Assembly (NCBI RefSeq): GCF_032191835.1
Contig: NC_083230.1
Span: 133,176,001 to 133,240,000, forward strand
Length of the DNA: 64,000 bases
Source of the DNA: Heteronotia binoei
Lineage: Eukaryota
Direction: 5' to 3'
Below the pieces are notes generated by a model. That model was not told the origin of the DNA. It worked only from the letters and a program-made list of their open reading frames with translations, and ran no database searches. The position numbers and the translations under genes are program-made. This document shows, piece after piece, positions 1 through 34,600 of this stretch. Position 1 is the stretch's first letter; every line of letters starts with the position of its first letter.

Positions 1-1150
1 TTAAAAACCTCCAAGGAAGGATAGCCCACCACCTCCCAAGGAGGAAGCCTGTTCCATTGAGGAACCGCCCTAACAGTTAGGAAGTTCTTCCTAATTTTGA
101 GCTGGAAACTCTTTTGATTTAATTTCAACCCATTGGTTCTGATCCAACCTTCTGGGGCAACAGAAAACAATTCTACATTATCTTCTATATAATAGCCCTT
201 CAAGTACCTGAAGATGGTGATCATATCACCTCTCAGTCATCTCCTCTCCAGGCTAAACATCCCCAGCTCCTTCAGCCTTTCCTTGTAGGACTTGGTCTCC
301 AGACCCCTCACCATCTTTGTTGCCCTCCTCTGGACCCGTTCCAGCTTGTCTATATCCTTCTTAAATTGTGGTGCCCAAAACGGAACACGATATTCTAGGT
401 GAGATGTAACCAGAGCAGAGTAAAGCAATACCATCACTTCATGTGATCTGGACACTACACTTCTGTTGATACAGTCTAAAATTGCATTTTCCTTTTTAAA
501 CACCACAACACATTTCTGACTCATGTTCGGTGTATGGTATACTAAGACCTCTAGATCCTTTTCACACATATTGTTGCCAAGACAAGTCTCCCACATCCTA
601 TAATGATGCATTTATTTTTTCCTACCTAAATGCAAAACTTTACATTTTTTCCTGTTAAAATTCATTTTATTAGTTACAGCCCAGTTTTCCAGCCTGTCAA
701 GATCATCCTGTATCCTGACTCAGTCTTCTACTGCATATGCTACCCCTACCAATTAAGCATTCCCTCTATTCCTTTATTCAAATGATTGATAAAGATATCA
801 AACAAAACAGGTCCTAGGACAGATCCTTGAGGCACTTCTCTCCAAGAGGATGAGGAACCATTCACAAGCCCTCTTTGGGTGTGATCTGTCAACCAGTTAC
901 AGATACACCTAACAGTAACAGGATCCAAACCATATTTTACCAACTTGTCAACAAGAATAATATGTGGAACCTTATCAGAAATCTTACTGAAGTCAAGATA
1001 AACTATATCTACAGTATTTCCCTGATCCAGCAAGGTAGAAACTTTGCCAAAAAAAAAAGAGATCAGATTAGTCTGACATGACTTGTTCTTGAGAAACCCA
1101 TGCTGGCTCTTAGTGATCACAGCCATCCTTTCTAAATGCTCAAGGACTGA
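1..1150 (-). mobile_element. CR1 LINE 3' fragment (RT C-terminal half), runs off the window start
   Basis: Minus-strand peptides [54 protein letters not shown]; frameshifted; the FADD motif is deleted near 760. Confidence 0.92.
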
Positions 1151-6418: not shown

Positions 6419-7457
6419 TTAGTTTAAAACAATTTATTATGCTGTAAGATATTGTAATAACACATTATCATTTGTTATTAAGGATTAATACATATACATT
6501 ACATTTTCTCCATCCCTCCCCCCTTTTGGTGACCCCCGGCAGTGTATTTTATTTAAATTGTTAAAAAAAGGTAATAAACTTTATCTATTAAAGAATCTTA
6601 CTTAATAGAAAAAAAACATCAAAAAGAAAAACATTATAATTGTAATCCATTTTCATTGTAGTCTTTTAGGCATTAACAAAAAAAATGAAAAGGATATATT
6701 CCAATAATCTCGCTTTTTTACTATAATCCATTTAAAGTTTCTTTAGAGATTTACCATTGTCAAAAATCGCCAAATATCCTTTAACGTTCCATTGTTTTTC
6801 AACATACTTTTGGAACTTTCCCCACTCATTTTTAAACTTCTCTAAATCTTGTTCTTTTAAGATTCTTGTAAGCTTGTCCATTTTACTCCAAGGCATAACT
6901 TTTAAAGTTCACTCCTACGTTTCTGGTATTTTGTGTTGTTTCCACATCTGCGCATATAATGTCCGTGCAGCTGAAAACATATACCAAATTATTGTTCTGT
7001 CTTGTTTTAAAAATGTTTCCATTTGTAATCCCAACAGAAAAATGTCTGGTGCCTTCTTAATATTATATCCCAAAATTTTCGAAATCTCTTGCTGAATCAT
7101 TTGCCAAAATTGTTTTGCCTTTTCACAAGTCCACCACATACGGTAGAAAGATCCTTCTTGTTTTTTACATTTCCAACATCTATCCGACACCTGATTGTTC
7201 ATTTTTGCCAGTTTCTTAGGTGTCATGTACCACCTATATAAAATGTAAAGCAATTTTCCTTAATTTTATAACATGTAGATATTTTCATAGAGTTCTTCCA
7301 TAAGTGTTCCATGACTCCATCTGTATTTCTTTATTTATATTTATCGCCCATTTTATCATTTGTGATTAACTACTTCATCTTCCGTAGACCATTTCAAGAA
7401 CAGCTTATATGTCTCTGAAATCAGCTTTTCATTTTCCCCAGACAGCATTCTCTCCAA
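6419..7457 (-). mobile_element. 5'-truncated L1 (ORF2 C-terminus + 3' UTR + short A tail)
   Basis: Peptide [25 protein letters not shown]...YRWYMTPKKL...RCWKCKKQEGSFYRMWWTC; 19-bp TSD caataaccg(a/g)tgtgctttt at 6400-6418 and 7458-7476. Confidence 0.92.
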
Positions 7458-7740: not shown

Positions 7741-10700
7741 GTAGGTCACTCATGGCCTGGCAGGGGAGAGCCCTAAAACCAGCTGGGGATGCAGAAATAA
7801 TCCATAAAGCCAGCAGAAAACTGCTCCCGCAATAGTCTCAACGCCCCAGGGTCTTGCCTGTCTCCAAAAAGATGCCCAAGTCAAAGCCAAGTGGGCTCGT
7901 TGAGGGAGGCATCGCCCCAGCAGTGGAAGTCCCTGTTCCTACTGAATGCCACGTTAGTGTCCATGTTTAGCAGAGCCTCAGTGCCTGATCTCTGCGCCTG
8001 TAGCAGTGGTGGAGAAAGATGCTCCTTGAGATATCCAAGGCCGAGGCAGTTCATGCCTCCTGTAAGTCAGAAACCAGAGCCTCACACTGAGTTTGGTGGA
8101 TGTTGCGCGCCTGCCACTTTGCCTCAGTTAAGCAGAATAAGCCAGAGTCTCTGGGAAGCAGCACGTGAGACCCACTGGGCTTCAGGTGGGGGAGGGGGGG
8201 ATGGGGGCGCCCTGTGGGGCTGGGAATGGTGGGCAGGGTCAGTGGCTGTTTGGGTCCTTATTGTGCTTACCCTTCACTAAGGTACGTTTTCAAGTCAGTT
8301 TAATACAAGTTAAATAAAGACACCAGGGGTGGCCAATGGTAGCTCTCCAGATGTTTTTTTGCCTACAACTCCCATCAGCTCCAGCCAGCATGGCCAATGG
8401 CTGGGGCTGATGGGAGTTGTAGGCAAAAAACATCTGGAGAGCTACCGTTGGTCACCCCCGATATACACACTATATAGAACATTTCAAATAATACAATTCA
8501 GAGTCAATACAGGAATAATACAGTAAGGTCACTCTTCAGTTTAAAGCTGAAATGACTGACTGGTGGAATAAACATATTTCCACTTGCCTCCAGAGTGAGC
8601 CCAAGGGAGGGCAGAACCAAGCCGTCTCTTAAGGGAGGAGTGTGTTCCGCACCAGACTGGATGAAGCCGAGCCCCTTACCTTTGGTGGGTTTTAGAGGGC
8701 AGCCTGACCCAGGCTGTACAGTCCCTGAAAGGAGAAAGCCAACAGTTTGAATCTGGCTTGGAAGTGCGTTTGTCAGAGTTGGTGTGTTGTTCTCGCTAGC
8801 TCAGCCGTCTTCTCCGGCTGGCAGGGGGGCAAAGTGTCCTGATGGTTTTCAAAGGCAGTTCCACATCAAGCATGTCCCAGCACTCCAGCCTGGCCTGGGC
8901 CAGCAAAGCTCAGCCTTCCAAGAGTGTTGATTCCATTTCCCTCAGATTGCAGGCAGGCATTGCTGGTTGTTTAAGAAACCACTGTGTGTGCATAGACTGG
9001 TGGATGAAAATGTAAGGCACGCTGAAACCTTATGGCTTAATGCTAGCTGCTCTGGGGACTAGGGGAGAACATAGTAAGACGCTTTTCAAATGAGATGGAA
9101 TTGAAGGCGAGGGAGAGGACGGAGACGTGTCTCAGGGACGGCACTGGAGATCAGCTCTCCTTGAGAAGGGGAGGGGGCATCGCTCCAGGGAGAGCCACGT
9201 CCAGCAGCCTTCTGTGCAGGGCTCCCCCCTGCGGGAGGGCAGGTGCTCTCTGGATGAGGCAGCTGAAGCCAAGTGAGTCTAGTGCCACTGCCAGTGCGAG
9301 AGACCAAGGAAGCCTTCAGGGATGCTGTTGTGGTCCCAGGGACACGTGCTCTCCCTCCCAGGGCAGGTTTATTGCAGAGGAATGGCCGCTGGGCCCAAGG
9401 GCTGTGTTTGTGGCTTAGCTGATGCAGACCAAAGCCTTCTCCATCTTCTGGCTTTCACAGATGCAGCTTGTGCTACCGCAAATTGGCTTGCCCCAGAATT
9501 ACCCCAGGGCTTTTTGTCACAATGAGATCTTAAGTCAAGCTGCAGCTTTCCTCTTTCGGAAAAGACCAGATTGCTTCCATAACCCCCCCCCCCCCCAAAT
9601 CTGGGAGTACATGTTCCACGGAGGAAGATTTTAGGGTTTTAATTTAAACTATTTATTGTGCCTCTTTCTGTTGTCAGGCTCCCTGAGTCCTGTGTGCAGG
9701 GGAGAGGCGACCAAGTGAATCCAACCCAAGAAATAAGAAATAACTTTCCCCCGTGTGGTGTGATTTGTGGCTGCTTCAGAATGAATGAGGGCGGGGGGGG
9801 GGGGGGCTCATGGCCAGAGTGGCTGCACCGGCTTCCTTCCTCTGCTCTGCTGTAATTCGCACAGGTATCCCAATACGGCTTGTGAACTGCTGACCTCAGA
9901 CGTGCCACAGATCAACGACAAGCTTGGGGGGGATGAGACATTACTGAACATCCTCTATGACTTCCTGGACCAGGAGCCCCCCCTGAACCCCTTGCTGGCC
10001 AGTTTCTTCAGCAAGACCATGGGCAACCTCATTGCGAGGAAAACGGAGCAGGTGAGTGTCAGTCCCTTTGCTCCTCTTGTGACTGTTCCCCCGGAAGTGG
10101 GCTGCCTGGCTCTCTGCTGATGCTGCTGCTCTGTGTGGCAGGCAACTCATGCTGTCTTTCATCCTTCCAGGTGATTTCATTTTTGCGGAAGAAAGCCACG
10201 TTTCTTGACCTGGTGCTGAAGCACATGGATACGTCCGCCATGATGGACCTTCTCCTGCGACTCATCAGCTGCGTGGAGCCCGCTCAGCTGCGGCAGGAAG
10301 TGCTCAGTGTGAGGGATGGGTCGCTTTTGGGGGTGTGCCAGAGGAGGAGACTAGAACTCTTCCTGGAGGAGTTGCTTTCCCCCTTCAGGCTTCTGGCCAG
10401 ACTCCGCTCCGGCTGCTTCCAAAGCCAAGGCTTGCCAGGGCAGGGCTCTGCAGGGTCCGCAGCCAGACAGGTTCTTCCCCACTTGGCCAAATGGGGGGAC
10501 CCTCCGTGACCTCAGGCAGCTTCCAGGCTGTAATGGGACAAACAGAAGGGAGAGGTGGTCTTGGTTCCCCTCAGCTGTATCAAGGCCTGGCACTGTGTGA
10601 GGCAGGATATTAAGTGATACAGAATATAACTGGGAGATCTGTGCAGTTTGTGTTTTTATGTTGGTCCAGATCACTGTCCTGTTTTGGAGTGAGAGGGAAG

Positions 10701-10985: not shown

Positions 10986-13900
10986 TTTATTCTTATACCC
11001 CGCCCTCCCCCGCCAAAGGCGGGCTCAGGGCGGATCACAGACATGGAATCCCATGATTCAGTAAAACAATACATAACTTTTGTAATGGAGCCTTTGCCCT
11101 GGCTGTCACATGATGTGGGGAGGGCGGTGAGAATCCTGAATGGGCTGCAGTGTTTGCAGGTGAGATAAAGAGATTCCCTTCCCAAAAGGGCACTGTGGAT
11201 TTGGTGGTGTCAGTGGGACTGAATGGGCTGTAGTATCTGCAGGTGGGACAAAGAGATTCCCTTCCCAAAAGAGCACTGTGGATTTGGTGGTGTCGGTGGG
11301 ACTGAATGGGCTACAGTGTCTGCAGGTGGGACAAAGAGATTCCCTTCCCAAAAGGGCACTGTGGATTTGGTGGTGTCGGTGGGACTGAATGGGCTACAGT
11401 GTCTGCAGGTGGGACAAAGAGCTTCCTTTCCCAAAAGGGCACTGTGGATTTGGTGGTGTCGGTGGGACTGAATGGGCTGCAGTGTCTGCAGGTGGGACAA
11501 AGAGCTTCCCTTCTCAAAAGGGCACTGTGGATTTGGTGGTGTCGGTGGGACTGAATGGGCTGCAGTGTCTGCAGGTGGGACAAAGAGCTTCCTTTCCCAA
11601 AAGGGCACTGTGGATTTGGTGGTGTCGGTGGGACTGAATGGGCTGCAGTGTCTGCAGGTGGGACAAAGAGCTTCCCTTCTCAAAAGGGCACTGTGGATTT
11701 GGTGGTGTCGGTGGGACTGAATGGGCTGCAGTGTCTGCAGGTGGGACAAAGAGCTTCCTTTCCCAAAAGGGCACTGTGGATTTGGTGGTGTCGGTGGGAC
11801 TGAATGGGCTGCAGTGTCTGCAGGTGGGACAAAGAGCTTCCCTTCTCAAAAGGGCACTGTGGATTTGGTGGTGTCGGTGGGACTGAATGGGCTGTAGTAT
11901 CTGCAGGTGGGACAAAGAGCTTCCCTTCCCAAAAGGGCACTGTGGATTTGGTGGAGTCGGTGGGACTGAATGGGCTGTAGTATCTGCAGGTGGGACAAAG
12001 AGCTTCCCTTCCCAAAAGGGCACTGTGGATTTGGTGGTGTCGGTGGGGCTGAATGGGCTGTAGTATCTGCAGGTGGGACAAAGAGCTTCCCTTCTCAAAA
12101 GGGCACTGTGGATTTGGTGGTGTCGGTGGGACTGAATGGGCTGCAGTGTCTGCAGGTGGGACAAAGAGCTTCCCTTCCCAAAAGCGCACTGTGGATCTCA
12201 TGGTGTCCGTGGGACTGAATGGGCTGTAGTATCTGTAGGTGGGACAAAGAGCTTCCCTTCCCAAAAGGGCACTGTGGATTTGGTGGTATCTGAGGACTGA
12301 TCCTTTGGCCTTTCCCCCTTTGTGTCCCTTCAGTGGCTGAATCAGTCGAAGGTCATCCAGAGACTTGTGGAGCTGATCTCTCCCAGCCAGGAGGACGATG
12401 TGAGTATGAGCCCTCCCCACTGATGGTTAGAGGCACATGGCTCCAATTGTGGGTACTTGTCCGTGCACTGTAAGAAGGGAGGTTTTCTTGCACTTGTGTT
12501 TCACATCACTCTTTCCTGCTGGCAGAAAAAGTATAAAACGAAAAAAGAATGCATGCCAAAAACCTGAACCTGTGGTCTGTTGCCTGCACAGGCCTAAAAT
12601 ACTCTCCACTGAATGCAGGCAGGTGTGTGAGGAGGAGGAGGAGGAGTGTGGGAGAGACAATCCCCTGTTGTGACTTGCAGGGGCCGTAGTGACTGAGCAG
12701 AGGGACCATGCCTCCTGTACTCTCCTCCTCTGGCAGTTCTGAGCTGAGAGCCAAAAGTATCCCAGCGGATTGCCTCCATTTGTCATTGCTGAATAAATTT
12801 CGTTTCTACACACAGAGGTGTTCCAGGAACTGACTCTTCATTTTGGATACATGCAGGCTGTGTCTTCACCAAATGCCCAAGCGAACAGGTTTTACCTGCT
12901 GCAGCTGCTCCCAAGTGGAGTGTGTTGATGTCAGGCCTCTTGCATGCCTGTCTCCACTCTCCCCCCCCCCCAATGATTTCCAGTGTCACCAGAATGAGAA
13001 GGGTGAGGTGTGGCTTATGTGACACCACTCTAGTTGAAAAAGCTTTGGTTTCTGCGCTTAGTGGTAGGATCAGTGCAGCCCCTCTGCTGCCCCCTGCTGT
13101 TGCTCAGCATGCTGAGTCTCAGGGTCCAGCAAACGCCCAGGCCAGGGGCATGGCCCTGTGGCGATTGACAGGCAGGCACTGTGAAGAAACTTGGCCAGAA
13201 GCGGCAGCCCAGCTGGCACTTTCTTGCCTTGCTAGACTTCTGCAGCTGGGCAGCTCCGCAGTCCCCTTGGAGAACGTTCTCCTGTTGTGGCGAAAGAAAC
13301 GGTTTATCAGCCCCGGTGTTGATGCCGTGTGAGCTCCTAAGAGCGGCATTTCAGTGCTGAGCAAAATCAAGCCGCTGCTCTGGGCTCTGAGGATCACCCG
13401 CTGAAGGCGTCATAAATGTTGCCTTGTGGAGGCATTTCTTGTTCAACTGCCGAGTTCCACCTGGGGGGTTCCACAAATGGGGAGGACAGGCATAGCCTCA
13501 CCTGTCTCTTCAGTGGCCTGTGGAGCTCTCCTGCCGATACTTATCAAGGCCGTGTTCCTCATAGCAAGAACGGCCCTGGAACTCAGAGCGTTCTTTGTCT
13601 CTGGCCTGGATGCCTTCTTCAGAGCGGATCTAGAATATGATCGCCATCTTGAAGTCATTAAAGTGCTGTCCTTGGAGGTTGGTGCGCAGTTGTTTTTTGT
13701 GACCCCAGAAGATCTGCACAGAACCAGTGGGCTGAAATTAAAAGAGTTTTTGGCTAAACATTGGGAAGAACTTCCTGACAGAGCAGTTCCTCCGTGGGAC
13801 AGGCTTCCTCCTTGAGAGGTGTTGGGCTCTCCTTCTTTGCAGGTTTTCAAAGAGAGGCTAGATGGCCATCTGACAGCAGTGCTATTCTCTTACAGATCCT

Positions 13901-16900
13901 GTGAAATGCTAATAATCAGGCAGCAATTTTTCCTCAGGCCAGATTTGCAGGGTTCTCCCCCCCCCCCCCTCTTCTGGGTGTGGAGGAGGTGGCACTGGGA
14001 TGTGGGGGTGAGGCATGTGTAAATTTCTTGCATTGTGTGGGATGTTGGACTAGAAGAAGAAGAAGATGATATTGGATTTATATCCCGCCCTCCACTCTGA
14101 AGAGTCTCAGAGCTGCTCACAATCTCCTTTCCCTTCCTCCCCCACAACAGACACCCTGTGAGGTAGATGAAGATATTGGATTTATATCCCGCCCTCCACT
14201 CTGAAGAGTCTCAGAGCTGCTCACAATCTCCTTTACCTTCCTCCCCCACAACAGACACCCTGTGAGGTAGATGAAGATATTGGATTTATATCCCGCCCTC
14301 CACTCCAAAGAGTATCAGAGCGGCTCACAATCTCCTTTACCTTCCTCCCCCCCACAACAGGCATCCTGTGAGGTAGATGAAGATATTGGATTTATATCCC
14401 GCCCTCCACTCCGAAGAGTCTCAGAGCTGCTCACAATCTCCTTTCCCTTCCTCCCCCACAACAGACACCCTGTGAGGTGGATGGGGCTGGAGAGGGCTCT
14501 TACAGCAGCTGCCCTTTCAAGAACAGCCTCTACCAGATCTATGGCTGACTCAAGGCCATGCTAGCAGGTGCAAATGGAGGAGTGGGGAATCAAACTCGGT
14601 TCTCCCAGATAAGAGTCCGCATACTTAACCACTATACCAAACTGGCTCTCCACACCAAACTGGCTCTCCAGGTGACCCTGGAGGTCCCTTACAACTCTGT
14701 GATTCTAGAATTGAGCCGGTTTGGTGTAGTAGTTAAGTGCGCATACTCTAATCTGGGAGAACCAGGTTTGATTCCGCACTCCTTCACATGCATCTACTGG
14801 TGTGACCTTGGGTCAGAACACTGTCAGAATCTGTTCTCTAAAGCAGTTTCTGTCAGAGCTCTCTCAGCCCCACCTACTTCACAGGGTGTCTGTAGTGGAG
14901 AGGGGGAGGGGAAGGAGATTCTATTTTTTTCCTTATAAATCAAATTTTATTATAGACTCATTATAATTCATACCTATTCCAACAGAAAAGTGTACAACAA
15001 TAACAAATAAAAAACAATACAACTTAACATCTCACCTGAGTTAACATAAACTAAAGTTGATCTATCTCTTTGGAGATTAATTCATGTGTTACCATTCCAC
15101 ACTTATTAATATGTATATATGTATGTCTATTTATATATTTTTATTATTACTATTATTTTTTTTAGTAGAGGAATAATTAAGCTTAACAATACTATCTTTC
15201 CTAACGCATTTTTAATGTTTAATACCACAATCATTCAATATTTCCTTCTTCTTCTATAACTTCATTATTCCTTCTACTCTAAAAAAACACAATACAATTA
15301 AATTCTAACAAAATATCTCAGTCCCTGGAGACCTCAAGGGTTAAGGTCTAGAAGAGATACTTCCCTCCTTCCACCTGGACTGAATTAGCTATGGAGGGAT
15401 ATTACCCAGTTGCTCGCGCCAGCTGACCCCACCCAACCATAAATTCCGAAGGAAAAGTCTTTAGATATAAATTATAAATTTCGTCAACTTTTCCATTTTC
15501 TTATTGCTTCAGTTTCTTTTTAGATAGAATCCATACTTTCTTCCAAGTTTACATGATCTTCCTCAGTACAAGCACGAGTTGTCCTTAAAGAGACGAGAGG
15601 AGAGCAATCCTTTCTCTCGTTTACTCTCGGTGCAGGGGAGGAGGGAGTTAACTTGGAGAGTAATAATTCACCCGAGGTTGCGCAGTATGCTGTATATGAA
15701 GTGGAGCCTTTTTGGACATATAATTTGCCTGATTGTAGCCATTTATATTTAATTTTTAAGTCCCGCAGTTTGGCAGTTGTATCCTTGAGGTCTCTTCTGA
15801 TTCTTAAAAATTCGGGAGGGAGATCCGGAAAGACCTGAATCTTTAACCCCTGATAGTCCAAGACTCCCCTCTCCCTGGCCTCTGCAAAGACTCTTTGCCT
15901 CATTTGATAGTCCTTAAACTGCACCAAAATATCTCTAGTATAAGACAAATTGTCTTCGCATACCTTGCCGACACGATATACTTTTTGAATGAGTGGGAGA
16001 ATTTCGGCCTCCAGGTGAGTTGCTTCAGCAAGCCAATTTGCCATAAATACATATAAGTCCATTTTAGCTTCCACATCAGATTTAAAACCTCTAAACTTTT
16101 AAACACAGCTCCCAGTTACGAAAGTCCATTGTTAAAACCCGTTCCCTCGTCCATGCATCTGTTGTTATTTCAGATATTCTCCCTTCACACTCTTGAGCTC
16201 TTTTTAAAGCTTCTTGTGCTGTCTGGTAACTTGTTTATGAGAATCCTCTAGTTCATTCAGACGCTGACATAACGGTTGTAACATAGAGGTTATGTCCTCT
16301 CGTATTTCTTGTCTTAACCTACGTAAAAAAATTCAATGTGAGAGGACATTCTCCAGCTGGTCCCTCGTATCTCTCCAACCTTGTGTGGGAGGTGGATGGC
16401 AATTCCAAGAAGTCATTTAAAAGCTGAATGCTTTTTTCCTTCTGTTTACACTTTTTCACCCCTTTAGGAGACATCTCTCAAAGATTAAAAAAATATAGTT
16501 TAAAGGGGTAAAAAGAATATAACTTTGGAGCCAGCTGGGCGAGCGTTAGGCAAAGGCTCTTGACCGGATATTGGTCAAAGCCACTCCCATCGGGAAGGAG
16601 ATTCTAAGCCACTCCGAGTGAAGGGCAGGGTATAAATCCAGTCTCCTCCTCCTCCTTCCTCCTCTTTGTCCTCCTCTTCCTCTTCTTCCCCCTCTTCCTC
16701 CTCTTTCTGCTATTCCTCCTCTTCCTCCTCCTCCTCATTTCAGACATTTATCATTTATTTCCTCACATTCTGACTGAAACCTCAGTGTGCAAAAGAGAAA
16801 GCATGACCTCTGTCTTGAATAGTTCAAGATGCATAGACATCTGCTTCATAGGTCAGCACACCTGGTAGCATTTGATAAAACCCCGCTTCCTAGTGGGCCT

Positions 16901-19557
16901 AGTCCAGGCACCCGCTTGAGCCTGGGCCAGCCGGTACAAGCCCCCTTCATCTAAAGTGGTGCAGCCATCAGGTACAGATAGTTTAACTGAACTTCTTTCT
17001 GTAGCTGATATTCTTTTCCCTCCCTCCAAGTTTAATAGCTTTTCAACATCCCATCCTGGAAAATTTAGAAAGGATGGCTGTGATTACTAAGAGCCAGCAT
17101 GGGTTTCTCAAGAACAAGTCATGTCAGACTAACTTGATCTGTTTTTCCCCCGAGAAAGTTACTACCTTGCTGGACCAGGGGAATGCTGTAGTTTATCTTG
17201 ATTTAAGTAAATCTTCTGATAAGGTTCCACATAGTATTCTTGTTGACAAGTTGGTAAAATGTGGTTTGGATCCTGTTACTGTTAGGTAGATCTGTAACTG
17301 GTTGACAGATCGCATACAGAGAGTGCTTGTGAATGAATGGTTCCTCATCCATTTAGAGAGGAGTGACAAGTGGAGTGCCTCAAGAATCTGTTCTGTTTTG
17401 TTAAACATCTTTATAAATTTTTTGGATGAAGGAATAGGGAGAATGCTTATTAAACTTGCAGATGATACTAAATTGGGGAGAGTTCCAAATACAGTAGAAC
17501 AGGGGTGGCCAACGGTAGCTCTCCAGATGTTTTTTGCATACAACTCTCATCAGCCCCAGCCAGCATGGCTATTGGCTGGGGCTGATGGGAGTTGTAGGGG
17601 GGGAAACATCTGGAGAGCTACCGTTGGCCACCCCTGCAGTAGAAGATAGAAACAAGATACAGGATGATCTTGACAGGCTGGAAAACTGGGCTGCAACTAG
17701 TAAAATGAATTTAAACAGGGATAAATGTAAAGTTCTGCATTTAGGCAGGAAAAAAATAAATGCATCATTATAGGATGCGGGAGACTTGTCTTGGCAGTAG
17801 TCTGTGTGAAAAGCATCTAGGGGTTGGGTAGCCCAATCCAGACATAAGTGGCGACCGGCCATGGCTTAGCTGCCGCGCCGCTAGTAGACTTCCTGAGGAC
17901 TTTGGCATGCTGGAGCGTGGGGAGGGGAGAGGCGTAGCTTGCCATGAGGGAGACAGTCGCCGTGGCAATGCCGCTGGCGGAGGCGCGGAAGGGAGGCGGA
18001 GACAGCTGGAGGGGAGGGCCAGCCCACCTACCCCCCATTGGCCAGTCCTGGCGCATGTGCCGCAGCTCATGACAGTCAGGGATGGGGAGAGGTGGCCCCA
18101 GAGAGGCTGATAGCCGTCCCCAACCTGCCCCAAACAGAGAATGGAGCCAATGATGGGCAGACCATCACAGGCAAAGGAGAGACGGCCTACCAACACGGGG
18201 AGGGAACAGGAATGAGGCTGGGCATGCGCACACGAGAAGCCTGGCTTGGGGGAGAAGTGGGGATGGGGGCGAGACAGGCCCACATGGGACCACAGAGAAG
18301 CCGTCAATCCCCTCACACCCTCCCACGAGTTTAAAGGGGTAAAAAGAATATAACTTTGGAGCCAGCTGGGTGAGCGTTAGGCAAAGGCTCTTGACCGGAT
18401 ATTGGTCAAAGCCACTCCCATCGGGAAGGAGATTCTAAGCCACTCCGAGTGATGGACAGGGTATAAATCCAGTCTCCTCCTCCTTCCTCCTCTTTCTCTT
18501 CTTCCCCCTCTTCCTCCTCTTTCTGCTATTCCTCCTCTTCCTCCTCCTCCTCCTCATTTCAAACATTTATCTCCTCACATTCTGACCGAAACCTCAGTGT
18601 GCAAAAGAGAGAGACTCTGCCAGTGGCAGGCAGACAAGCAGGAAGTACCAAGTGCAGCAGCTGGAATGTGTGTTTGGGAGTTGGCAGCCCAGCAGCAGAC
18701 ACCCCCCCCCCACCCAGAGACCCCCTGTGCTGCCCTGACACCCCCTGCCATGTAATGGAACATCTCTCCCAGAGGCCGCAGAACTCAGAGTGCGAGTGCA
18801 TCAGCCACAGAAGCGCCCAGTACATAACCCGTCACCAACGTGCCTGCCTGTCCCTCATTAAGTCTGTATGGCCGGGAGCTCACCGGCAGAGCTTCCCACC
18901 ACGCGCGCCTCACCCTAACAACTGAGTTATTGGTTTTTAAGGGTTTAATTGCTTAAATATTTAATTGTTTTTATACTTAAAATTGTTTAATTTTCATGTT
19001 TGATCAATTTTGGAAGCCGCCCTGAGCCACTTGTGGGAAGGGCGGGATATAAATCTCGAATAAATAAATAAATAAAATAAGTTGTGCGAGGCCAGAGCTG
19101 AAGTATTTCTAGGAGGGGGGAGACCGCGATTGGGTGCTGCGGAGGGGGCTCGTCAGCCCGAGGTGCGAGGGGATTGGCGAGGCAATCACGCTGCTCCCTA
19201 AGGGGTTTGTGAACTTCCGCAGCGGCGGAGGCAACCTTTGTTTTTGGTTTCAACGAGTGCCTATGGAGCACGCCGCCATTTTTGCAGGTGTAAAGTTGCG
19301 CCTCTCAGGGGGACATGTCTTGGGCCAAACTGCTCAGGAAGCTGCCTAAGCCTGGCCGTGCCCCCAGCTCCACCCCCTCCTCCGCCTGAATGCCGCGTTC
19401 CGCCTCACTTCTGTCCACACTTGGGCGCAGCCCTCAGGCGCCGCTGCTCTTGGGTGGAGTGGTGCTCAGGTGGCCCACCATAAGAACATAAGAGAAGCCA
19501 TGTTAGATCAGGCCAATGGCCCATCCAGTCCAACATTCTGTGTCACACAGCGGCCAA

Positions 19558-19601
<44 letters not shown>

Positions 19602-22600
19602 GCACTGTGGCTAATAGCCACTGATGGACCTCTGCTCCATATTTTTATCTAACCCCTTCTTGAAGGTGGCTATGCTTGTGGACGCCACCACCCACGTAAC
19701 TCCCCTCCACTGTGGTGGCACTGGTCGTACGTCGGTGCAAACTCTTCCTGCTCCCACGTAGCGGCTTGTCTGCTCCCAAAAGACCTTCTGCACCCCCACT
19801 CTGGATTGTGCTGTTAGTGGACCATATGCTGAACATGAGTCAACTGTGTGATGCTGTGGCTAAAAATGCAAATGCAATTTTGGGCTGTATCAACAGGCGT
19901 CTAGTGTCCAGATCATATAATGTGATGTTATCGCTTTACTCTGCTCTGGTAAGACCTCACCTGGAGTCTTGTGTTCAGTTTTGGGCACCACATTTTAAGA
20001 AGGCTATAGACAAGCTGGAATGGGTCCAGAGGAGGGCGACGAAGATGGTGAGGGGTCTGGAGACCAAGTCCTTTGAGGAAATGTTGAAGGAGCTGGGGAT
20101 GTTTAGCCTGGAGAGGAGGCGGCTGAGAGGTGATAGGATCACCATCTTCAAGTCCTTGAAGGGCTGTCATATAGAGGATGGTGCAGAATTGTTTTCTCTG
20201 GCCCCAGAAGTAGGACTAGAACCAGCAGGTTGAATTTACATAACAGAGTTTGTGGCTCAGCATTAGGAAGAACTTCCTGACCGTTATAGTGATTCCTCAG
20301 TGGAACAGGCTTCCTCAGGAGGTGGTGGGCTCTCCTTCCTTGGAAGTTTTTAAACAGAGGCTATATGGCCATCTGACAGCGATGCAGATCCTGTGAATTT
20401 AGGGGGAGGTGTTTGTGAGTTTCCTGCATTGTGCAGGGGGTTGGACTAGATGACCCTGGAGGTCCCTTCCTTGCAACTCTCTGATTCTCTGATTCCTTTG
20501 TATCTCCTCCATCGAGTGGAGTTGGGCAGTTGGAGTTGAAGTGAAGTATTCTTGGTGCGGAGATCTTCCTGGGCCCAGGCTGTGATTTGATGGAGGACAG
20601 TGGAGGACTGTGCCATCACTTCACAGCGGACTAATTGCGACCCTGGGTGGGGTTTCTAAGGGAAGAGAGGTGGCTTGCCATTGCCTGCCTCCATGTCAGG
20701 GCCTTGGGGTTCTTGAATAGTTCCAGATGCTTAGGCAGTTTGGTGAAGTGGTTAAGTGTGCGGACTCTTATGTGGGAGAACCGGGTTTGATTCCCCACTC
20801 CTCCACTTGCACCTGCTGGAATGGCCTTGGGTCAGCCATAGCTCTGGCAGAGGTTGTCCTTGAAAGGGCAGCTGCTGGGAGAGCCCTCTCCAGCCCCACC
20901 CACCTCACAGGGTGTCTGTTGTGGGGGAGGAAGGGAAAGGAGATTGTGAGCCGCTCTGAGACTCTTTGGAGTGGAGGGCGGGATATAAATCCAGTATCTT
21001 CATCTACCTCACAGGTTGTCTGTTGTGGGTGAGGAAGGTAAAGGAGATTGTGAGCCGCTCTGAGACTCTTTGGAGTGGAGGGTGGGATATAAATCCAATA
21101 TCTTCATCTACCTCACAGGGTGTCTGGTGTGGGTGAGGAAGGGAAAGGAGATTGTGAGCCGCTCTGAGACTCTTCGGAGTGGAGGGCGGGATATAAATCC
21201 AATATCTTCATCTACCTCACAGGGTGTCTGGTGTGGGGAGGAAGGGAAAGGAGATTGTGAGCCGCTCTGAGACTCTTCGGAGTGGAGGGCGGGATATAAA
21301 TCCAGTATCTTCATCTACCTCACAGGGTGTCTGTTGTGGGGGAGAAAGGTAAAGGAGATTGTGAGCCGCTCTGAGACTCTTCGGAGAGGAGGGCGGGATA
21401 TAAATCCAATATCTTCTTCTTCTTCATAGGTCAGCACACCTGGTAGCATTTGAGGAGGGAGGAGGAGGAGGAGACTGAATTTATACCCTGTCCTTCACTC
21501 CCATCCAAATACTAGGCAGGGCTGGCCTGCTTGGCTTCTGAGAGCTGATGAGATAGAGTAGGCTGGACCATCCTGGTCAGGGCATCTGTTGCCGACACCC
21601 CCCTCCCCTCCGCTGTGCAGACGGATGATCTCTGAGTGCTGTGCTCAGTCCCATCAGGGCTTGACGGCCCCAGTGTCAGTCACTGTGGGGCTGCAGGGGC
21701 TTCATTGTCGAGCAGTAACACTTTCACTGTTTCTTTTTTTGTAGCATCTCTTTGAGATCCTCTTGGTAGAAGTACAAAGACGATTGATGGTTTCTCTTCA
21801 GAATGTTTTGTTGCATGACGTAAACATGTGAAGTTTTTGTTATTGCTCGTCTGCCATCTTCACACCATAAAATGAAGCCGTTTATCGATCTGTTGCTTTC
21901 CATACTGACTTCAGTATTCACTTAAAGCAGTGCTGAAATGGTCATTAACGGACAGAGCCCTGAAGGCTGGAAAATGATTCTGGCTCCTGTGTTTCCACCA
22001 GGCTGGTTCTAGAGCCAAAGTTCTGTAACATTTTGGCATTACATGTTCTGTAACATTTTGGCACTCAGGGAGCTGATGAGCCCAGTGTTCTTGGGCCACT
22101 CTGGCTCTGACTTGTCTCCTTGTCCACAGAGGCAGTCCAATGCTTCCCAGACCTTGTGTGACATCATCAGGCTCAGCCGAGACCAGAGCAGTCAACTCCA
22201 GGAGGCAGCTGAGCCAGATCCACTCCTTGCAGTGCTGGAGTCGTAAGTAGATTTTTTACAGCCATTGGTTGCCGCTACTGACCATCCAGGAGGCACAGAT
22301 AGCCTAGCAGTAGGCACTAATACTATCTTTAAAGGGCTGGGACAGTTTCCCCAGTGTGTTGGGCTTGACATTTCATAGCTGCACCTCCTTGGCAGCAAGG
22401 TCAGTGTGACTGTTTCGCTTCAGTGTTGTCTCTGAGAACATAAAAAGAGCCCTGTTGCATCAGATCATTCATGTGGTCCATCTAGCCCAGCTTCCTGTCT
22501 CACACAGTGGCCAGCCAGTTCCTCTGGAGGGCCAACAACAGGGCACAGAGGCCAAGGCCTTCCCCTGAGAAGAACATCAGAAGAGCCCTGCTGGGTCAGG

Positions 22601-28600: not shown

Positions 28601-31600
28601 TCTGAGTTTCTCTCAAGGACTGCTCCACCTGTTTCCTCGTGTGCACCAAAGGTGGCCTGTTCCACTTCCAAGGATGGCCCCCCTGGCACCTGCTGGAGGC
28701 CCCGGGCCTTTCCCAGTGCAGCCCCCAGACTGTGGAGGGTGCTCCCTGCAGAGGAGAGAGGGAGGAGGCCCTTCAGGGGAGAGCATCAGGAGGTGCTGCT
28801 GCAAGGGTTGCTTATTTGGAAGACTGCAATTACTAGGGGTGCGCACAAAAAAGATTAGGTATTTTTCAGGGTTAGGTATACTAAGGCTGGAAAATATTGC
28901 TATGTACTGATATTCCTGAATCCCAATATTGGTATAATCATGGGATTAGGGAGATAATGGGTACTTTCTCTTTACTCCCTGGGGGGTGCTGTTGCAGTGC
29001 AACACCGGGGTGGGGGTGGGGAAGGGAAGGTATTTAAATACCTTCCCTCTTTGAGTCATGTTGCATCAGGTAGAGAAGGGAAGCAGAGGGCTTTAAAGGC
29101 TTCCTCCCAGGGTAGCTGATAAGCAGATGGGTGACCCATTAGGCTGATCGGCTTGCTCTAGGAGGAAACCATTTAACTCCTCCATTTTGCTCTGAAGTGG
29201 GGGAAGGAAAGCAGAGGGAGTTTAGCCACTTCTTTCTAGGAGACTGATGTACTGACAGGTGGACCTGCTGGGCTGATTGGTTTCCCTGGGAGGAAGCCTT
29301 TTCGGTGCTTTTTCCCCACTTTCCGCGCTCTGGAACAGAGGAGAAAGGAAGCCCTGAAATGGCTGGTAGGCATTTAAACTGAATAGCTGACGGGCTATTT
29401 AGTTTAAATGGCTAGGGGTTTCGGTATAGCTGAAAGCACCCGAATAAAAGCCGAATAAATTTGGTTTATTTCATGCTTAGCTATATTGGTGGCTGAATAT
29501 AGATCTCTGATACATAATTCAGCTTACATAATACCAGAAGAATACCGTTAAGGTATTTTTCAGGTATTTATTTGGCTTGGTTACTCATGAATGCATGCCC
29601 TGGTAATTACCCGTAGACCACCTCAAGCGAAGAGGAAAAGCAGGGTATGCATATTTCAGTGCATAAATAAAATGGCCACTACACTAGTCCTTTCTCCTCA
29701 TGGGGTGGTTGCCACCAAACTGTTGGAGGATCCAGGGGTGTGTGCATAGCTATACCCTGGATGACTTTCCCATTGAGTCCCCCTCAGGATCCAGGGTGGC
29801 AGAGATGTGTAGAAGACTCCTGACCACTCCAGTGGCTTGGTCACCCCCCCCCCCCTCCAAAGACAGTGTCCTTTGATGGCTTAATAACATGTTCTAGTAG
29901 CTTACCTGGACAGATTTCAAAGGTTATTGGTTCCCCTTTGGCCTCCTCCGTGGAGTTACATTTGCCGCTTTCCAGCTCCCTGGCACAGAGGCTGATTTTA
30001 GTGGCAAATTACATACCCTGGTTAGCAGATCAGCAGCTTGAGCTCTTTAAGAACCCTTTGGTGCATCCCTTTGGACTCGGGGCCTCTGCTCCATGCCCTG
30101 CTCTTCCAGCGCAGTCATTTGTTTCTTTTCAGCCAGTTCCCCTGTTTCCTTCTCTTTATCAAGATAAGGCTCAAGGGTTTGGCCAGGGGACATGAGAATG
30201 CAGCTTCACTTTGAAATAACCCTTCGGTCCTGGATCTCCACTCACAGTCATTCTGTGGGGGGGTCTGCTTCCCCTGATGCTTCTAGCTTGAGTCTGTGTT
30301 CTCTTTGACAGACAGAGCAGCACCTCCTCTGGCCCCTCCCTCCCTGCCCTGGCTGTAGAGCTGATGTCCAGGGATAACAGCCGCCCATAGGTTTCCCCAT
30401 CCACCATGTTTGACACCAAGCACTCTGCCCTGCTGCCCCTTGGCCTCTAGATCTGGAAACTAGACTTCTCTCCAATGCTCTGTGGCCCTTTGCTCCCTGC
30501 CCACGGTTCTCCTTTTCGCCACCTATTGTCAGACCCAAGTTCTACCAGAACTCCTGTCAACATCCCCCTCAGCATTTCCCACATCATCACTTTGGGATAA
30601 GTCATCCTGAACTGGGTTCACCTCAGCTTTTCTCTGTAGGTTTGTTTAAAAGCTGCTCTGCCATCTTTTTGAAATTGTGCTAGCAGTGCAGTTCCTGTTA
30701 GCCTCCTGGCCCCACTTTCTCACTGATGGATTGAGACCCCTCATCTCTGCCTGCCTGTGGCGTTCTGAGAGCGGCTCTGGCCTTTCGCCTGCTGCCTGGT
30801 TGCCTAATCCTCCTTCAACACGCGGCTCCATTCCATGATGTCGTCCGTGCCAGTGTGCACTTGACTCCTCCCAGCACTGGGAATCAAACCATCTTGCTAG
30901 CAGGTGGTAGCGGCAACCTTTGCACCTGACAGGCAAGTCACCAACCCCACTCTCTTTGCTCTTAATTGTGAAGGACTTGCAAGCCCCACTCTGAGAGCCA
31001 GGTTGGTGCAGTGGTGAAGTGTGCAGACTCTTATCTGATTCCCCACTCCTCCACTTGCACCTGCTGACATGGCCTTGGAGGAGTTGTCCTTGAAAGGGCA
31101 GCTGCTGTGAGAGCTCTCTCAGCCTCAAACACCTCACAGTGTGTCTGTTGTGGGGGGGGGGGAAGATAAAGGAGATTGTAAGCCGCTCTGAGTAGTCTCT
31201 GATTCAGAGAGTATAAATCTGCAGTCTTCTTCTTCTCTCTTTTTGTTTGAGGACCTTGATAAAGCACTGCAGACATCCCGGGTGTCTACCCGGCAAGACC
31301 AACCCTTTCCTTTCTCTCCAGGGAGGCTGACTTTCTGTCTCCTGTCAACAAATCTGAACAAGGATGGTTCATACATCCGGCACTTGGTGTCTGGATTGCC
31401 ATTTAAAGGCTCTGCCTGTTTGCAGCTCATTCTGGCTGGCACCACGGGACAGTCTGTTGCATGGGATGGGTGGGCTCTGAGTTGCAGAGATGGGTTTTTC
31501 TTCTGTGGCTCTCGGGCTTCTTGGCCCTCTAGACCTCCCCCAGCTGTCTCTGGGACTCTGCAGCCTGTTCTGGCTTTTCTTGGGAAGCATAGCAAGCAAC

Positions 31601-34600
31601 AGGCTGGAGCTCAGCTAGGTATGGAAGCTCTGAGAAGGAAATTTGCCTGAATCCTGCCTGAGGAACCAGTGAGAGGCATAACCCTTTCCCCACAGGTGAG
31701 AAGGAGGTGTTCCATTCTCAAATAACTGCACCTGGCTCATTGCTTTATCTGTTGATCACCTTTCAACTCAAAGTCCCAAAGAGAGTTGATAGCAGATGGG
31801 ATGAAAAGTCATTTAGAAGAAGATGATACTGGATTTATACCCCACCCTTCACTCTGAATCTCAGAGTGGCTCACAATCTCCTTTACCTTCCCACCCCCCC
31901 TCCACAACGGACACTCTGTGAGGTAGGTGGGGCTGAGAGAGCTCTCACAGAAGCTGCCCTTTCAAGGACAACCTCTGTGACTGTGACCCAGGGCCATGTC
32001 AGCAGGTGTAAGTGGAGGAGTGGGGAATCAAACCCGGTTCTCCCAGATAAGAGAGCTCTGGCTGACCCAAGGCCATTCCAGCAGGTGGAAGTGGAGGAGT
32101 GGGGAATCAAACCCGGTTCTCCCAGATAAGAGAGCTATGGCTGATCCAAGGCCATTCCAGCAGCTGCAAGTGGAGGAGTGGGGAATCAAACCCGGTTCTC
32201 TCAGATAAGAGAGCTCTGGCTGACCCAAGGCCATTCCAGCAGGTGCAAGTGGAGGAGTGGGGAATCAAACCCGGTTCTCCCAGATAAGAGAGCTCTGGCT
32301 GACCCAAGGCCATTCCAGCAGGTGGAAGTGGAGGAGTGGGGAATCAAACCCGGTTCTCCCAGATAAGAGAGCTATGGCTGACCCAAGGCCATTCCAGCAG
32401 CTGCAAGTGGAGGAGGGGGGGAATGAAACCCGGTTCTCCCAGATAAGAGAGCTCTGGCTGACCCAAGGCCATTCCAGCAGCTGCAAGTGGAGGAGTGGGA
32501 AATCAAACCCGGTTCTCCCAGATAAGAGAGCTCTGGCTGACCCAAGACCATTCCAGCAGCTGCAAGTGGAGGAGTGGGGAATCAAACCCGGTTCTCCCAG
32601 ATAAGAGAGCTCTTGCTGACCCAAGGCCATTCCAGCAGGTGCAAGTGGAGGAGGGGGGAATCAAACCCAAATAAAGAGTCTGCACACTTAACCTCTACAC
32701 CAAACTGGCTGTCAGTATAATAACCATACAGTCTTCCAGTTGCCATTCCCTTTGCCATCTTGTTTCTTCTCAGAAGGCCCCCCTGCTCTGGAGAATCTGG
32801 GGGGGGATGGGGAAGGCAGGCAGCTTGGGAGGCACCTGCCTTCCCCCAGGAGTTGCTTGGCCCGCTGTGCAGCATGATCTCCAGGGGTGCCTGCTCCACC
32901 CTCTGCTGGCCTCTCGTGCCTCTGCGGCAGGGACAGGTCTGCCTCTCCCACCGCCTTGGTCACGCTTTACGAAGCAGCCAAAGCACAGCCCAGCCTAGGA
33001 AAAAGGCGCTTTCGTGTGCTCTTGTTCCTCCAGTCACAGTCGACAGTCATCCAAAGCATTGTCATGGAAACGGGGCTCAATAGACATTAAGCCTAAAGCT
33101 GGGCTCAGCACTGGACTTAATTGGAAAAGAATGCCTTTGGCAGTGTGGAGGGTTTTCTTGCCATGCATCCCATAGCGCAGTTGCTGTCAGCTGTGTTTAA
33201 AGAGTGGGGCAGGCATGGCTCTTAAGCAGCCAGCAGCCCCATCATCTTTGCTTTCACAAACTGGTATTTGTTAAGAAGTTCCAAAAAGAGGAAGGGTTAA
33301 AAGAGCGTTCAGAACATGTGTGGAGTGCCTTTATGATACTGCAGAGTAGATTTGGAAGGACGTTGGAGGCCTGAGCTTCCATCCCAGCAGCACTGGTGAG
33401 TTTGTGCCATTGGGTCCCCCTCCCGAGCCTCTCCCAGTGTTGCCAGAGTAGGTGAAATCGGGGGATGGAAAGAGGGTGCTGGGGCATCCACAGAGCACAG
33501 CTGCTCTGAAAGGAAAGAGGAGGTATGACCTCTTATACACAAAGGAGTATGAATTGCAGAGCTGTTAAAATGTATGCAGATAAATGCATCTCAGATGTGA
33601 TCAGACCTTGCAGAGGAGTGCAACAGCTTTCCTGTTTTAATGTGACCATCTTCAGACAATTTCATCAGACTGCAGATAGAAGGTTCCTAAATTAATAACA
33701 TCAGAATCTGTTATCAAAATCTCTTAAAATGAGAGCAGCTCGGGGCAGACCTGCTCTGGTACTGCTCAGCTTGCCTTTCCTGAACATTCTCCAGTCAATC
33801 AAACAAACAAAGCTGCTAGTGCAGTTCCAAAGACATGAGGGGCTGCAGTGGCTCCAGAGGTGCCGCTCTCTCTGTGAATCCGGAATCCAACCCAGAACGG
33901 GGTCAGATTTGTTTTTTGGACTCTTGAGTCTTGCCTCAGCTTTCCCTGGGCGACGCTGTTGCTGGCCCTCCTGCCGTTTTGCCCGTGGGGGACGTCCACC
34001 TGCGTGGGGAGCAGCACCTGCTTCTGAGGACACGCTCGCTTGGAAACTGCTGCGATGGTCTGCGTGGTCTTGCCAGGGCAGAGTTCTGTCTGATGGCCTC
34101 CCCTGCGAAGGCTGGTCTGCTTCTTGTCACCTCTGGCTCCGAGCTCTCCTCTTCCTGGGCTCCAACTTCTGTCAAGAATGCAGAGAAATCTCTGTAGGAC
34201 TAAGCAGGTTTTGCTTAACCGTTCTGTCCCAATTCTACCATTGCAGACGTCTCAAGCTCATCTGTTACGAGGGCCGGATCGGACAGAAGTGATGTCTCTT
34301 TGTTGGGCTGGGCCAGGCATACCATAAAATGTAATGCCAGTACCGGTGACACAGACTTTATAAAGGACACAGGCAAACCTAAGTAATGACATTTTTTACT
34401 CAAAACGCAAACGTGTTCATGCATTAGCACTCCGGCAGCATTTCATGACAGCGTCTTCCTGCTGCCCCCCCCCCACTTCCCCTGCCCATTGTGCATTAGC
34501 CCTGAGGGACAGGAACCCTGGACAGGAAGCCTCTGGCCCACAGGCCCTACGTTTGACACCTCTGCCAGGCAGGGCCTGTATAGGAGCTCCTTTGGACAAG

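Follow-up and report, generated by a model that had tools for sequence, protein, structure and literature searches.

A dead, retroposed L1 ORF1 unit without ORF2 in a gecko-type genome, probably of the HAL1 design

The 64-kb window (the whole stretch of DNA that was analyzed) carries a retroposed insertion of 1,668 bp on the minus strand, at window positions 14924 to 16591. We interpret it, with a probability of roughly 0.6, as a dead copy of an ORF1-only, L1-derived, nonautonomous retroposon of the HAL1 (half-L1) design in a gecko-type genome. The insertion is a discrete retroposed unit, in which a target site duplication (TSD), an A-run, an AATAAA signal, an L1-type target, and an ORF1 of full extent occur together; ORF1 is present and ORF2 is absent within the same TSD-bounded interval. 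The original prediction had offered two readings, a HAL1-like family mobilized in trans or a retrocopy of an ORF1-only L1 mRNA, and all of our tests fit this pair.

The ends of the insertion are sharply defined. A 15-bp sequence, tagaatctccttccc when read on the minus strand, lies at the 5' end of the element (16592 to 16606) and is exactly duplicated at its 3' end (14909 to 14923), in agreement with the predicted TSD of 14 to 15 bp. The element interrupts a host SINE, the right part of which lies at 14700 to 14908 and the left part at 16607 to approximately 16650, both on the minus strand, as delimited by alignment to other SINE copies in the window. In intact copies of this SINE, the 15-mer is single copy. 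The empty site, rebuilt from the 5' flank, one 15-mer, and the 3' flank, showed no gap at the junction when aligned to five other SINE copies of the window (20738 to 21004, 31816 to 32053, 40695 to 40979, 14376 to 14648, and 30995 to 31193). This alignment rules out the TSD as a chance repeat or as the product of two adjoining SINE copies. The nicked strand reads GGGAAGGAGATTCTA/AGCCAC, which corresponds to TTCTA/AG, or to TTCT/AAG if one A is assigned to the tail. Read in this way, the nick site is of a loose L1-endonuclease type. Together with the exact 15-bp TSD, which falls in the range of approximately 7 to 20 bp of L1-type insertions, and a short tail of 7 A (14924 to 14930), this T-rich/A nick site makes up the L1-type integration marks of the element.

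A second copy of the 5' junction, absent from the original prediction, was observed 1.8 kb from the element at 18328 to 18613 on the minus strand. It consists of approximately 190 bp of flank, the 15-bp TSD, and 95 nt from the very 5' end of the element, after which unrelated DNA follows. The element portion is identical at 94 of 95 positions, and substitutions over the whole duplicate amount to approximately 2 to 3%. We rejected the idea that the 1,526 bp between the two junction copies had been retro-inserted and had generated an exceptionally long TSD, since neither end carries a run of A or T. A nucleotide search of the 64-kb window with the element returned only the element itself and this duplicated 95-nt 5' end, with no second copy and no full-length relative.

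The coding part of the element is an L1-type ORF1 of approximately 317 codons that is broken but full in extent (15520 to 16474, minus strand), beginning with an ATG at 16474 and ending with a stop codon at 15520 to 15522. The frame changes three times, near 16317, 16224, and 16097, and there is at least one internal stop, the codon at 16319 to 16321 that ends the first piece. The broken frame was searched as separate open pieces, with neither a consensus nor a mended frame. Four pieces were colinear on an L1 ORF1p profile (A1), covering profile positions 4 to 23, 68 to 101, 101 to 144, and 144 onwards. The basic N terminus mapped weakly to the first of these intervals (E = 0.11), whereas the N-terminal/coiled-coil pieces matched the second and third with E values of 1e-5 and 0.003, respectively. 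The longest open piece, of 192 amino acids (15523 to 16098, minus strand), comprises the RRM and the C-terminal domain and shares 35% identity (E = 4e-30) with the ORF1 product of an intact L1 in the same window. Profile A1 itself matched the human L1 ORF1p structures 2YKP, 2YKO, and 2LDY with an E value of approximately 1.5e-17. The Pfam family Transposase_22 gave a weak hit to a single piece (E = 0.03, below the cut-off). Judged by these matches, ORF1 is clearly of the L1-clade ORF1p type, with a coiled coil, an RRM, and a C-terminal domain, and the prediction of a whole, frameshifted ORF1 was borne out from ATG to stop.

Downstream of ORF1, the element continues for 596 nt with a G+C content of 29%, close to the approximately 600 nt of AT-rich sequence that had been predicted. 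It consists of a noncoding 3' module (14931 to 15519, minus strand) and the tail, and it includes an AT-rich, low-complexity stretch at approximately 15104 to 15172. An AATAAA poly(A) signal occupies 14946 to 14951, 15 nt before the run of 7 A, in keeping with the earlier reading; the probability of this placement by chance is approximately 0.05. As expected from that reading, ORF2 was not detected. A tblastn search of 3.5 kb (14000 to 17500) with the ORF2 of the window's own L1 gave a best E value of 3.9, and Pfam was blank on all 9 open pieces of the 3' part. No Rfam family matched the element or its flanks.

The intact, autonomous L1 (53574 to 59934) has ORF1 at 53673 to 54683 and a 1,282-amino-acid ORF2, preceded by a 99-nt leader, with a 1,060-nt spacer between the two frames, an AATAAA, a short A-run, and a 17-bp TSD. 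Like the element, it combines a short leader and an ORF1 of the same family with AATAAA, a short T-rich stretch, a short A-run, and a TSD in the range of 15 to 17 bp; unlike the element, it possesses the long spacer and ORF2. It has no nucleotide similarity to the element and therefore belongs to another L1 lineage. On this comparison, the intact L1 is a possible donor of enzymes, not the parent. The 3' module was also compared with the spacer and the 3' untranslated region (UTR) of this L1 at a word size of 7, as the original prediction had called for, and only chance 10- to 13-mers were found. Derivation of the module by recombination with the 3' UTR of this particular L1 was rejected for lack of likeness; because the only full-length L1 available is of a different lineage, the comparison is a weak test that leaves the true parent lineage unaddressed.

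Other copies of the element, with identities of 86 to 97%, were found in contigs from three public studies, comprising one RNA run and two small DNA runs; one of the three carries a second organism label. Within a single run, as many as 7 contigs cover the same position of ORF1. At the 5' end, the matches of two RNA-run contigs stop at 16588, 3 nt short of the end of the element, and one of them continues for 34 nt that do not match the flank at this locus. The 117-nt leader (16475 to 16591, minus strand) is therefore probably complete. The predicted complete 5' UTR is supported in this indirect way, and the leader of the intact L1 is similarly short. At the 3' end, similarity ceases at 14945, directly behind AATAAA, in two distinct contigs, which carry 54 and 137 nt of unmatched sequence beyond. 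Contigs cover the terminal 135 nt of the 3' module (14945 to 15079), and one contig extends from ORF1 across its stop into the module (15396 to 15746). The other copies, as pieced together from short contigs in which no copy runs from end to end and no TSD of another copy was seen, thus agree with the element at the ORF1-to-3' junction, over the 3' part, and at both ends. Since their matches stop at the same 5' end and just past AATAAA, the element is probably one member of a multicopy family.

The same contigs bear on the possibility that the locus received an ordinary full-length L1 from which ORF2 was subsequently removed by internal deletion or by recombination between spacer and 3' UTR. 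The 3' module has nearly the composition of the L1 3' UTR in this genome (29% versus 30% G+C), and the AT-rich stretch at 15104 to 15172 falls within a hole in the contig coverage of the 3' module (15095 to 15220) that could hide a join. However, a private deletion would not be shared, whereas copies with different flanks share both the junction at the ORF1 stop and the terminal 135 nt, and no remnant of ORF2 was found in the 3.5 kb searched. A one-off deletion at this locus, which the original prediction had named as an outcome that would count against it, does not agree with these partial data, and we consider it very improbable. The other outcome that it had named, continuation of all remaining family copies into ORF2, was likewise not found to hold within the same partial data.

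The contigs also inform on the decay of this copy. At all three places where the ORF1 frame changes, contigs of other copies differ from the element by an indel; given this coincidence, the breaks probably belong to this copy alone. Among 31 listed differences in ORF1 relative to the other copies, a small and partial sample, 12 were synonymous and 19 were nonsynonymous, with a neutral expectation of 21 to 35% synonymous. This ratio is indistinguishable from neutral decay and lends the ORF1-only reading no support.

We then consider the relatives of the ORF1 protein. In a collection of 5.8 billion proteins, the 192-amino-acid query found one match, of 35% identity, and a 125-amino-acid piece found none. 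A full HMMER scan of the cluster representatives yielded 334 matches, the best with 41% identity. An intact ORF1 protein of this lineage is thus absent from that collection, a point against an ORF1-only family. The nearest proteins are from geckos, Gekko kuhli and Eublepharis macularius. A conserved 27-mer, used as an exact pattern against JGI metagenome contigs, had no match, as expected.

Gecko proteins of this kind raise the question of whether the element is a processed pseudogene of a host gene derived from L1 ORF1, comparable to mammalian L1TD1, and hence an mRNA retrocopy instead of a transposon. Such a retrocopy would show the same leader, open reading frame, 3' UTR with AATAAA, A tail, and TSD, and annotated gecko genes such as Eublepharis LOC129323355 do code for ORF1-like proteins. 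However, the annotated gecko proteins are only approximately 36 to 41% identical to the ORF1 of the element, and the several distinct variants in small runs, with as many as 7 contigs covering one place, are more in keeping with a repeat family. We therefore give the host-gene origin very little credence.

A more serious alternative treats the element as a by-product: transcripts of a full-length master L1 of this lineage would sometimes be cut and polyadenylated at an AATAAA in its long ORF1-ORF2 spacer, and the resulting ORF1-only RNA would be copied by L1 ORF2p. Recurrence of this event would generate copies with the same ends without a self-propagating lineage. Premature polyadenylation of L1 RNA has been tied both to 3'-truncated insertions and to HAL1 (PMC4859970), and the spacer of the intact L1 does contain an AATAAA 641 nt past the ORF1 stop, a distance comparable to the 596-nt 3' part of the element. 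The contigs cover the ORF1 core more deeply than the leader and the 3' module. The same profile would arise if ORF1 were common to full-length L1 relatives, and it counts for the by-product and against an ORF1-only family. On the other hand, the window holds no full-length relative of this lineage. In addition, two other copies stop matching behind AATAAA, lacking the 14 nt up to the tail that would be expected from one master cut at one site, a weak point drawn from two clipped contig alignments. The 3'-truncated L1 insertions described by Perepelitsa-Belancio and Deininger (2003), as reviewed in PMC4859970, resemble the element as 5'-complete, ORF2-less retrocopies that end at an internal AATAAA and an A tail. 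They differ in being sporadic products of full-length elements, whereas several copies of the present element appear to have the same ends and no full-length parent lies in the window. Taken together, we regard the by-product as unlikely, though it merits real weight. Further points weigh against an ORF1-only family: the contigs are short, with none running end to end, and the hole at 15095 to 15220 could hide a join. RNA reads matching the element were few, came from both strands, and were mostly partial, and they lend no support to expression as a unit. The other copies with shared ends nevertheless lean toward a family.

If the element is of the HAL1 design, a source copy would have been transcribed by RNA polymerase II from its own short leader, and the AATAAA at the end of the element itself would have directed cleavage and polyadenylation of the transcript. 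ORF1p made from this transcript may have coated the RNA, and a full-length L1 of that genome would have supplied the endonuclease and reverse transcriptase that bound its poly(A) end. Nicking of the T-rich/A target and copying of the RNA in place, by target-primed reverse transcription, would have produced the 15-bp duplication. The inserted copy then decayed through three frame changes and a stop, and part of its 5' junction would have been duplicated nearby at the DNA level. The anatomy of the insertion, the homology of ORF1, the lack of ORF2, and other copies with the same two ends are observed; we infer that L1 ORF2p mobilized the element in trans, that its own ORF1p had any part in this, and that new copies stemmed from ORF1-only sources and not from a full-length L1.

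The closest known counterpart of this design is HAL1 of mammals (Smit 1999; Bao and Jurka 2010, as cited in PMC5753468, PMC5322556, and PMC13756887). Like the present element, HAL1 carries L1 ORF1 alone without ORF2, has a poly(A) tail and TSDs, and must borrow its endonuclease and reverse transcriptase from full-length L1s. The host, however, is a mammal in one case and a squamate in the other, and the 3' module of the present element is unlike everything with which it was compared. Its nearest ORF1 relatives are gecko proteins with no more than 41% identity, which would imply an independent origin and not descent from mammalian HAL1 families such as HAL1, HAL1b, and HAL1M8 of Repbase. The same relationship argues for an origin of this ORF1 within squamate L1s. 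The literature searched, the coverage of which is incomplete, yielded no account of reptilian HAL1-type elements and no description of ORF1-only half-L1 elements outside mammals. A more distant parallel is provided by HeT-A and other ORF1-only telomeric retrotransposons of Drosophila, in which ORF2 has been lost repeatedly and ORF1-only lineages can spawn new ones (bioRxiv 10.1101/2025.06.09.658640). Like the element, HeT-A is a non-LTR retrotransposon that has kept ORF1 alone and relies on the ORF2 proteins of other families. In contrast, it belongs to the Jockey clade and not to L1, encodes a different type of ORF1 protein, and is specialized for telomeres, whereas the present element is dispersed and lies within an intron.

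Elements with ORF1 alone bear on the question of what ORF1p contributes in cis when the reverse transcriptase is borrowed. The copy described here is dead and old and is not an active element; its value therefore lies in its membership of a family and in its use as a dated marker. A squamate family of the HAL1 design, if true, would mean that this design evolves repeatedly and would provide a second independent system for the pairing of L1 lineages with their parasites. Squamate genomes have many L1 lineages active at once. We tentatively suggest, at a little under even odds, that geckos harbor a self-propagating, ORF1-only L1 parasite lineage independent of mammalian HAL1, with a promoter-bearing leader and a 3' module ending in AATAAA, that lives off coexisting squamate L1 lineages, and that this copy is one of its fossils. 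If so, the loss of ORF2 with retention of ORF1 would be a recurrent outcome of L1 evolution across amniotes and not a mammalian oddity.

On the minus strand, the element, an ORF1-only insertion resembling half an L1, reads from 16591 to 14924 as a 1668-bp block between exact copies of a 15-mer (16592-16606 and 14909-14923, minus strand), and it lies within a SINE. The empty site was rebuilt by joining the 5' flank, one 15-mer, and the 3' flank, and was aligned to the window's copies of this host SINE. The rebuilt site was gap-free across the join against five other copies, in each of which the 15-mer region is present once. The 15-mer pair is therefore a true target-site duplication (TSD); the same five-copy alignment ruled out both a chance repeat and an origin of the pair from two neighboring SINEs. 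The first-nicked strand reads GGGAAGGAGATTCTA|AGCCAC, a T-rich/A sequence of the loose type cut by L1 endonuclease. The original description of a 14- to 15-bp TSD at an L1-endonuclease-type site is thus borne out, the duplication being exact over 15 bp.

The 5' junction occurs twice. Positions 16497-16801 recur in the same orientation at 18328-18613, 1.8 kb apart, each copy being approximately 290 to 305 bp long and running from unique flank through a GA-rich microsatellite and the left part of the SINE to the 15-bp duplication and the element's first 95 nt, after which the second copy breaks into unrelated GC-rich DNA. The element part is identical at 94 of 95 positions, and the copies overall differ by approximately 2 to 3% substitutions plus microsatellite length changes. 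The 1526 bp between them show no A or T run at their ends, so a retro-insertion with a very long TSD was rejected. No strong match of this interval to DNA downstream of the element was detected; the only matches there pair 17054-17449 and 17635-17824 with window positions 547-1146, at 81-89% identity and a distance of 13 kb, and have the appearance of dispersed repeats. The junction repeat represents either a DNA-level duplication after insertion or an assembly error, and the TSD argument is unaffected by it.

Other repeats surround the element. A GA/CT-rich trinucleotide or 9-mer microsatellite (16643-16736) lies directly upstream of the host SINE and, read on the minus strand, gives rise to a spurious ORF of 47 aa rich in Arg, Lys, and Glu. 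A repeat of about 150 bp at 17487-17636 and 8312-8466, matching as a pair in both orientations, is palindromic and MITE-like; its copy at 17487-17636 sits inside another repeat (17054-17824, approximately 81-89% like 547-1146). Units derived from SINEs or LINEs form several head-to-tail arrays, at 11112-12300, 14056-14483, 20902-21430, 32052-32710, 35233-35877, and 46514-47657; blastn offsets put the repeat periods at about 83, 104, 79, and 140 bp. Two of these arrays, 14056-14483 and 20902-21430, are mutually inverted and flank the element's region.

The leader of the element (117 nt, 16591-16475, minus strand) ends before the ATG at 16474, from which ORF1 extends in a broken frame to the stop at 15520-15522. 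It consists of four successive open pieces in frames 0, 1, 0, and 1, with changes near 16317, 16224, and 16097, and the first piece is terminated by a stop at 16319-16321. The last piece, of 192 aa, aligns at 35% identity (E 4e-30) with residues 158-307 of the ORF1 encoded by the intact L1, an apparently autonomous element of a different lineage (53574-59934, plus strand). Whereas the latter ORF1 (53673-54683) meets Pfam's own cutoff for the L1 RBD-like domain, the 192-aa piece alone matches that domain weakly (E 0.03). A profile built from this piece and 22 homologues retrieved the solved structures of human L1 ORF1p (E 1.5e-17), and the three upstream pieces were colinear on it at 4-23 (weak), 68-101 (E 1e-5), and 101-144 (E 0.003). 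By this mapping, ORF1 is full in extent, with a basic N terminus, coiled coil, RRM, and C-terminal domain, in agreement with the earlier description of a whole but frameshifted ORF1, which here carries three frame changes and a stop.

After the ORF1 stop, the noncoding 3' module consists of 596 nt with 29% G+C, including a low-complexity AT stretch. Its AATAAA (14951-14946, minus strand) is followed by 15 nt and then seven A residues, a distance from an A-run expected by chance with a probability of about 0.05 given the base composition. These values match the roughly 600 nt of AT-rich sequence and the AATAAA some 15 nt before a short A tail noted originally. The reported lack of ORF2 also holds: with the window's 1282-aa ORF2 as the query, no ORF2 remains were detected in 14000-17500 (best E 3.9), and the nine open pieces of the 3' part matched no Pfam family. 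Rfam families likewise gave no match in the element and its flanks. Taken with the TSD and the extent of ORF1, this absence confirms a discrete ORF1-only retroposed unit.

Nucleotide search of the 64-kb window revealed neither a second copy of the element nor a full-length relative. Four public sequencing runs from four studies were then matched to the element at a likeness of at least 85%. Contig evidence was provided by one RNA run and two small DNA runs, one of the latter under a second organism label; the fourth run comprised raw RNA reads, with low coverage of the element from a few, mostly partial matches on both strands. The contigs of the three runs match at 86-97%; reads of this very locus would be more alike, and the contigs hence come from other copies. 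Up to seven contigs of one run overlap a single ORF1 position, and the second organism label contributed a 725-nt contig approximately 96% alike over ORF1. A 351-nt contig spans 15396-15746, bridging the ORF1 stop and the adjoining 3' module. The terminal 135 and 71 nt are represented in two distinct contigs; their match ends at 14945, the base behind AATAAA, beyond which they continue for 54 and 137 nt that resemble neither the element's tail nor its flank. Toward the 5' end, the match of two contigs breaks off at 16588, 3 nt short of the element's first base, and one of the two continues for 34 unmatched nucleotides. Contigs leave a gap at 15095-15220, where low complexity was skipped in matching, and are deeper over the ORF1 core than at the ends, which could reflect conservation or an ORF1 shared with full-length relatives. 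Because start, ORF1-to-3' join, and end recur among them, these contigs, which are short and none of which spans the unit, point to a multicopy family sharing all three.

A join and terminal part common to other copies make a private internal deletion of an ordinary L1 at this locus unlikely. An origin as the processed pseudogene of a host gene derived from ORF1 is unlikely as well, since the contigs show several variants and annotated ORF1-like proteins of geckos are no more than 41% identical. Non-triplet indels separate the contigs from the element at all three frame-change places, so the frame breaks are probably private decay of this copy. Among the listed differences from other copies, a small and partial set, 12 of 31 are synonymous, against a neutral expectation of 21-35%, a count that does not differ clearly from neutral decay.

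The intact L1 has a 99-nt leader, an ORF1 of 336 aa, an ORF2 of 1282 aa, a 342-nt 3' UTR, AATAAA, a short T-rich stretch, and a short A-run, and its TSD measures about 17 bp (aaaatagcggagagcag). Its ends resemble those of the element in style (short leader, AATAAA, short A-run, TSD), but its lineage is a different one, and no nucleotide likeness was found between the two, including the 3' part, for which comparison with a full-length L1 had been proposed, against the intact L1's 3' UTR and its unusually long ORF1-ORF2 spacer of 1060 nt. This spacer contains AATAAA at 55324, 641 nt past ORF1, and early polyadenylation has been described for human L1 RNA (PMC4859970). The element might accordingly be viewed as a by-product of a full-length master L1 polyadenylated early in such a spacer. 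We regard this as rather doubtful; two other copies diverge right behind AATAAA, whereas the 14 nt preceding the tail would be expected to be common to products of one master cut at one site, although this objection is weak. Of the two readings offered originally, a HAL1-like family or a retrocopied ORF1-only L1 mRNA, a choice that these data support, we favor the family, at a probability of roughly 60%.

The element bears the signs of L1-type target-primed reverse transcription in its A-run, AATAAA, 15-bp duplication, and nick site. RNA of the element would have been copied in this way by an enzyme supplied in trans, since the element has no reverse transcriptase, and its own ORF1p may have aided it, as supposed for HAL1. 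Donors of the right kind exist in the genome, as the intact L1 has open ORF1 and ORF2 and ends of the same style; being of another lineage, it cannot be named as the donor. On the minus strand at 6921-7244, a fragment encoding the C-terminal part of an L1 ORF2 shares 37% identity with residues 1110-1218 of the ORF2 in the intact L1 and adds to the window a third L1 lineage, an old one.

The element shares the design of HAL1, namely ORF1 only, a poly(A) tail, TSDs, and dependence on L1 enzymes. HAL1 elements are described as mammalian and as having arisen several times (PMC5322556, PMC5753468, PMC13756887); no report of HAL1-type elements in reptiles was found in the searched literature, outside which lie most subscription journals and Repbase. 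The ORF1-only telomeric elements of Drosophila are a more distant analogue than HAL1. In Eublepharis macularius, LOC129323355 (XP_054825859/XP_054825860), which carries an ordinary gene annotation with two isoforms, encodes a 326-aa L1-ORF1-like protein that may represent either a domesticated ORF1 or a further ORF1-only element. The proteins closest to the element's ORF1 are from the geckos Gekko kuhli and E. macularius, which argues that this ORF1 stems from squamate L1s; on these protein affinities, the ORF1-only design found here would be of an origin independent of mammalian HAL1.
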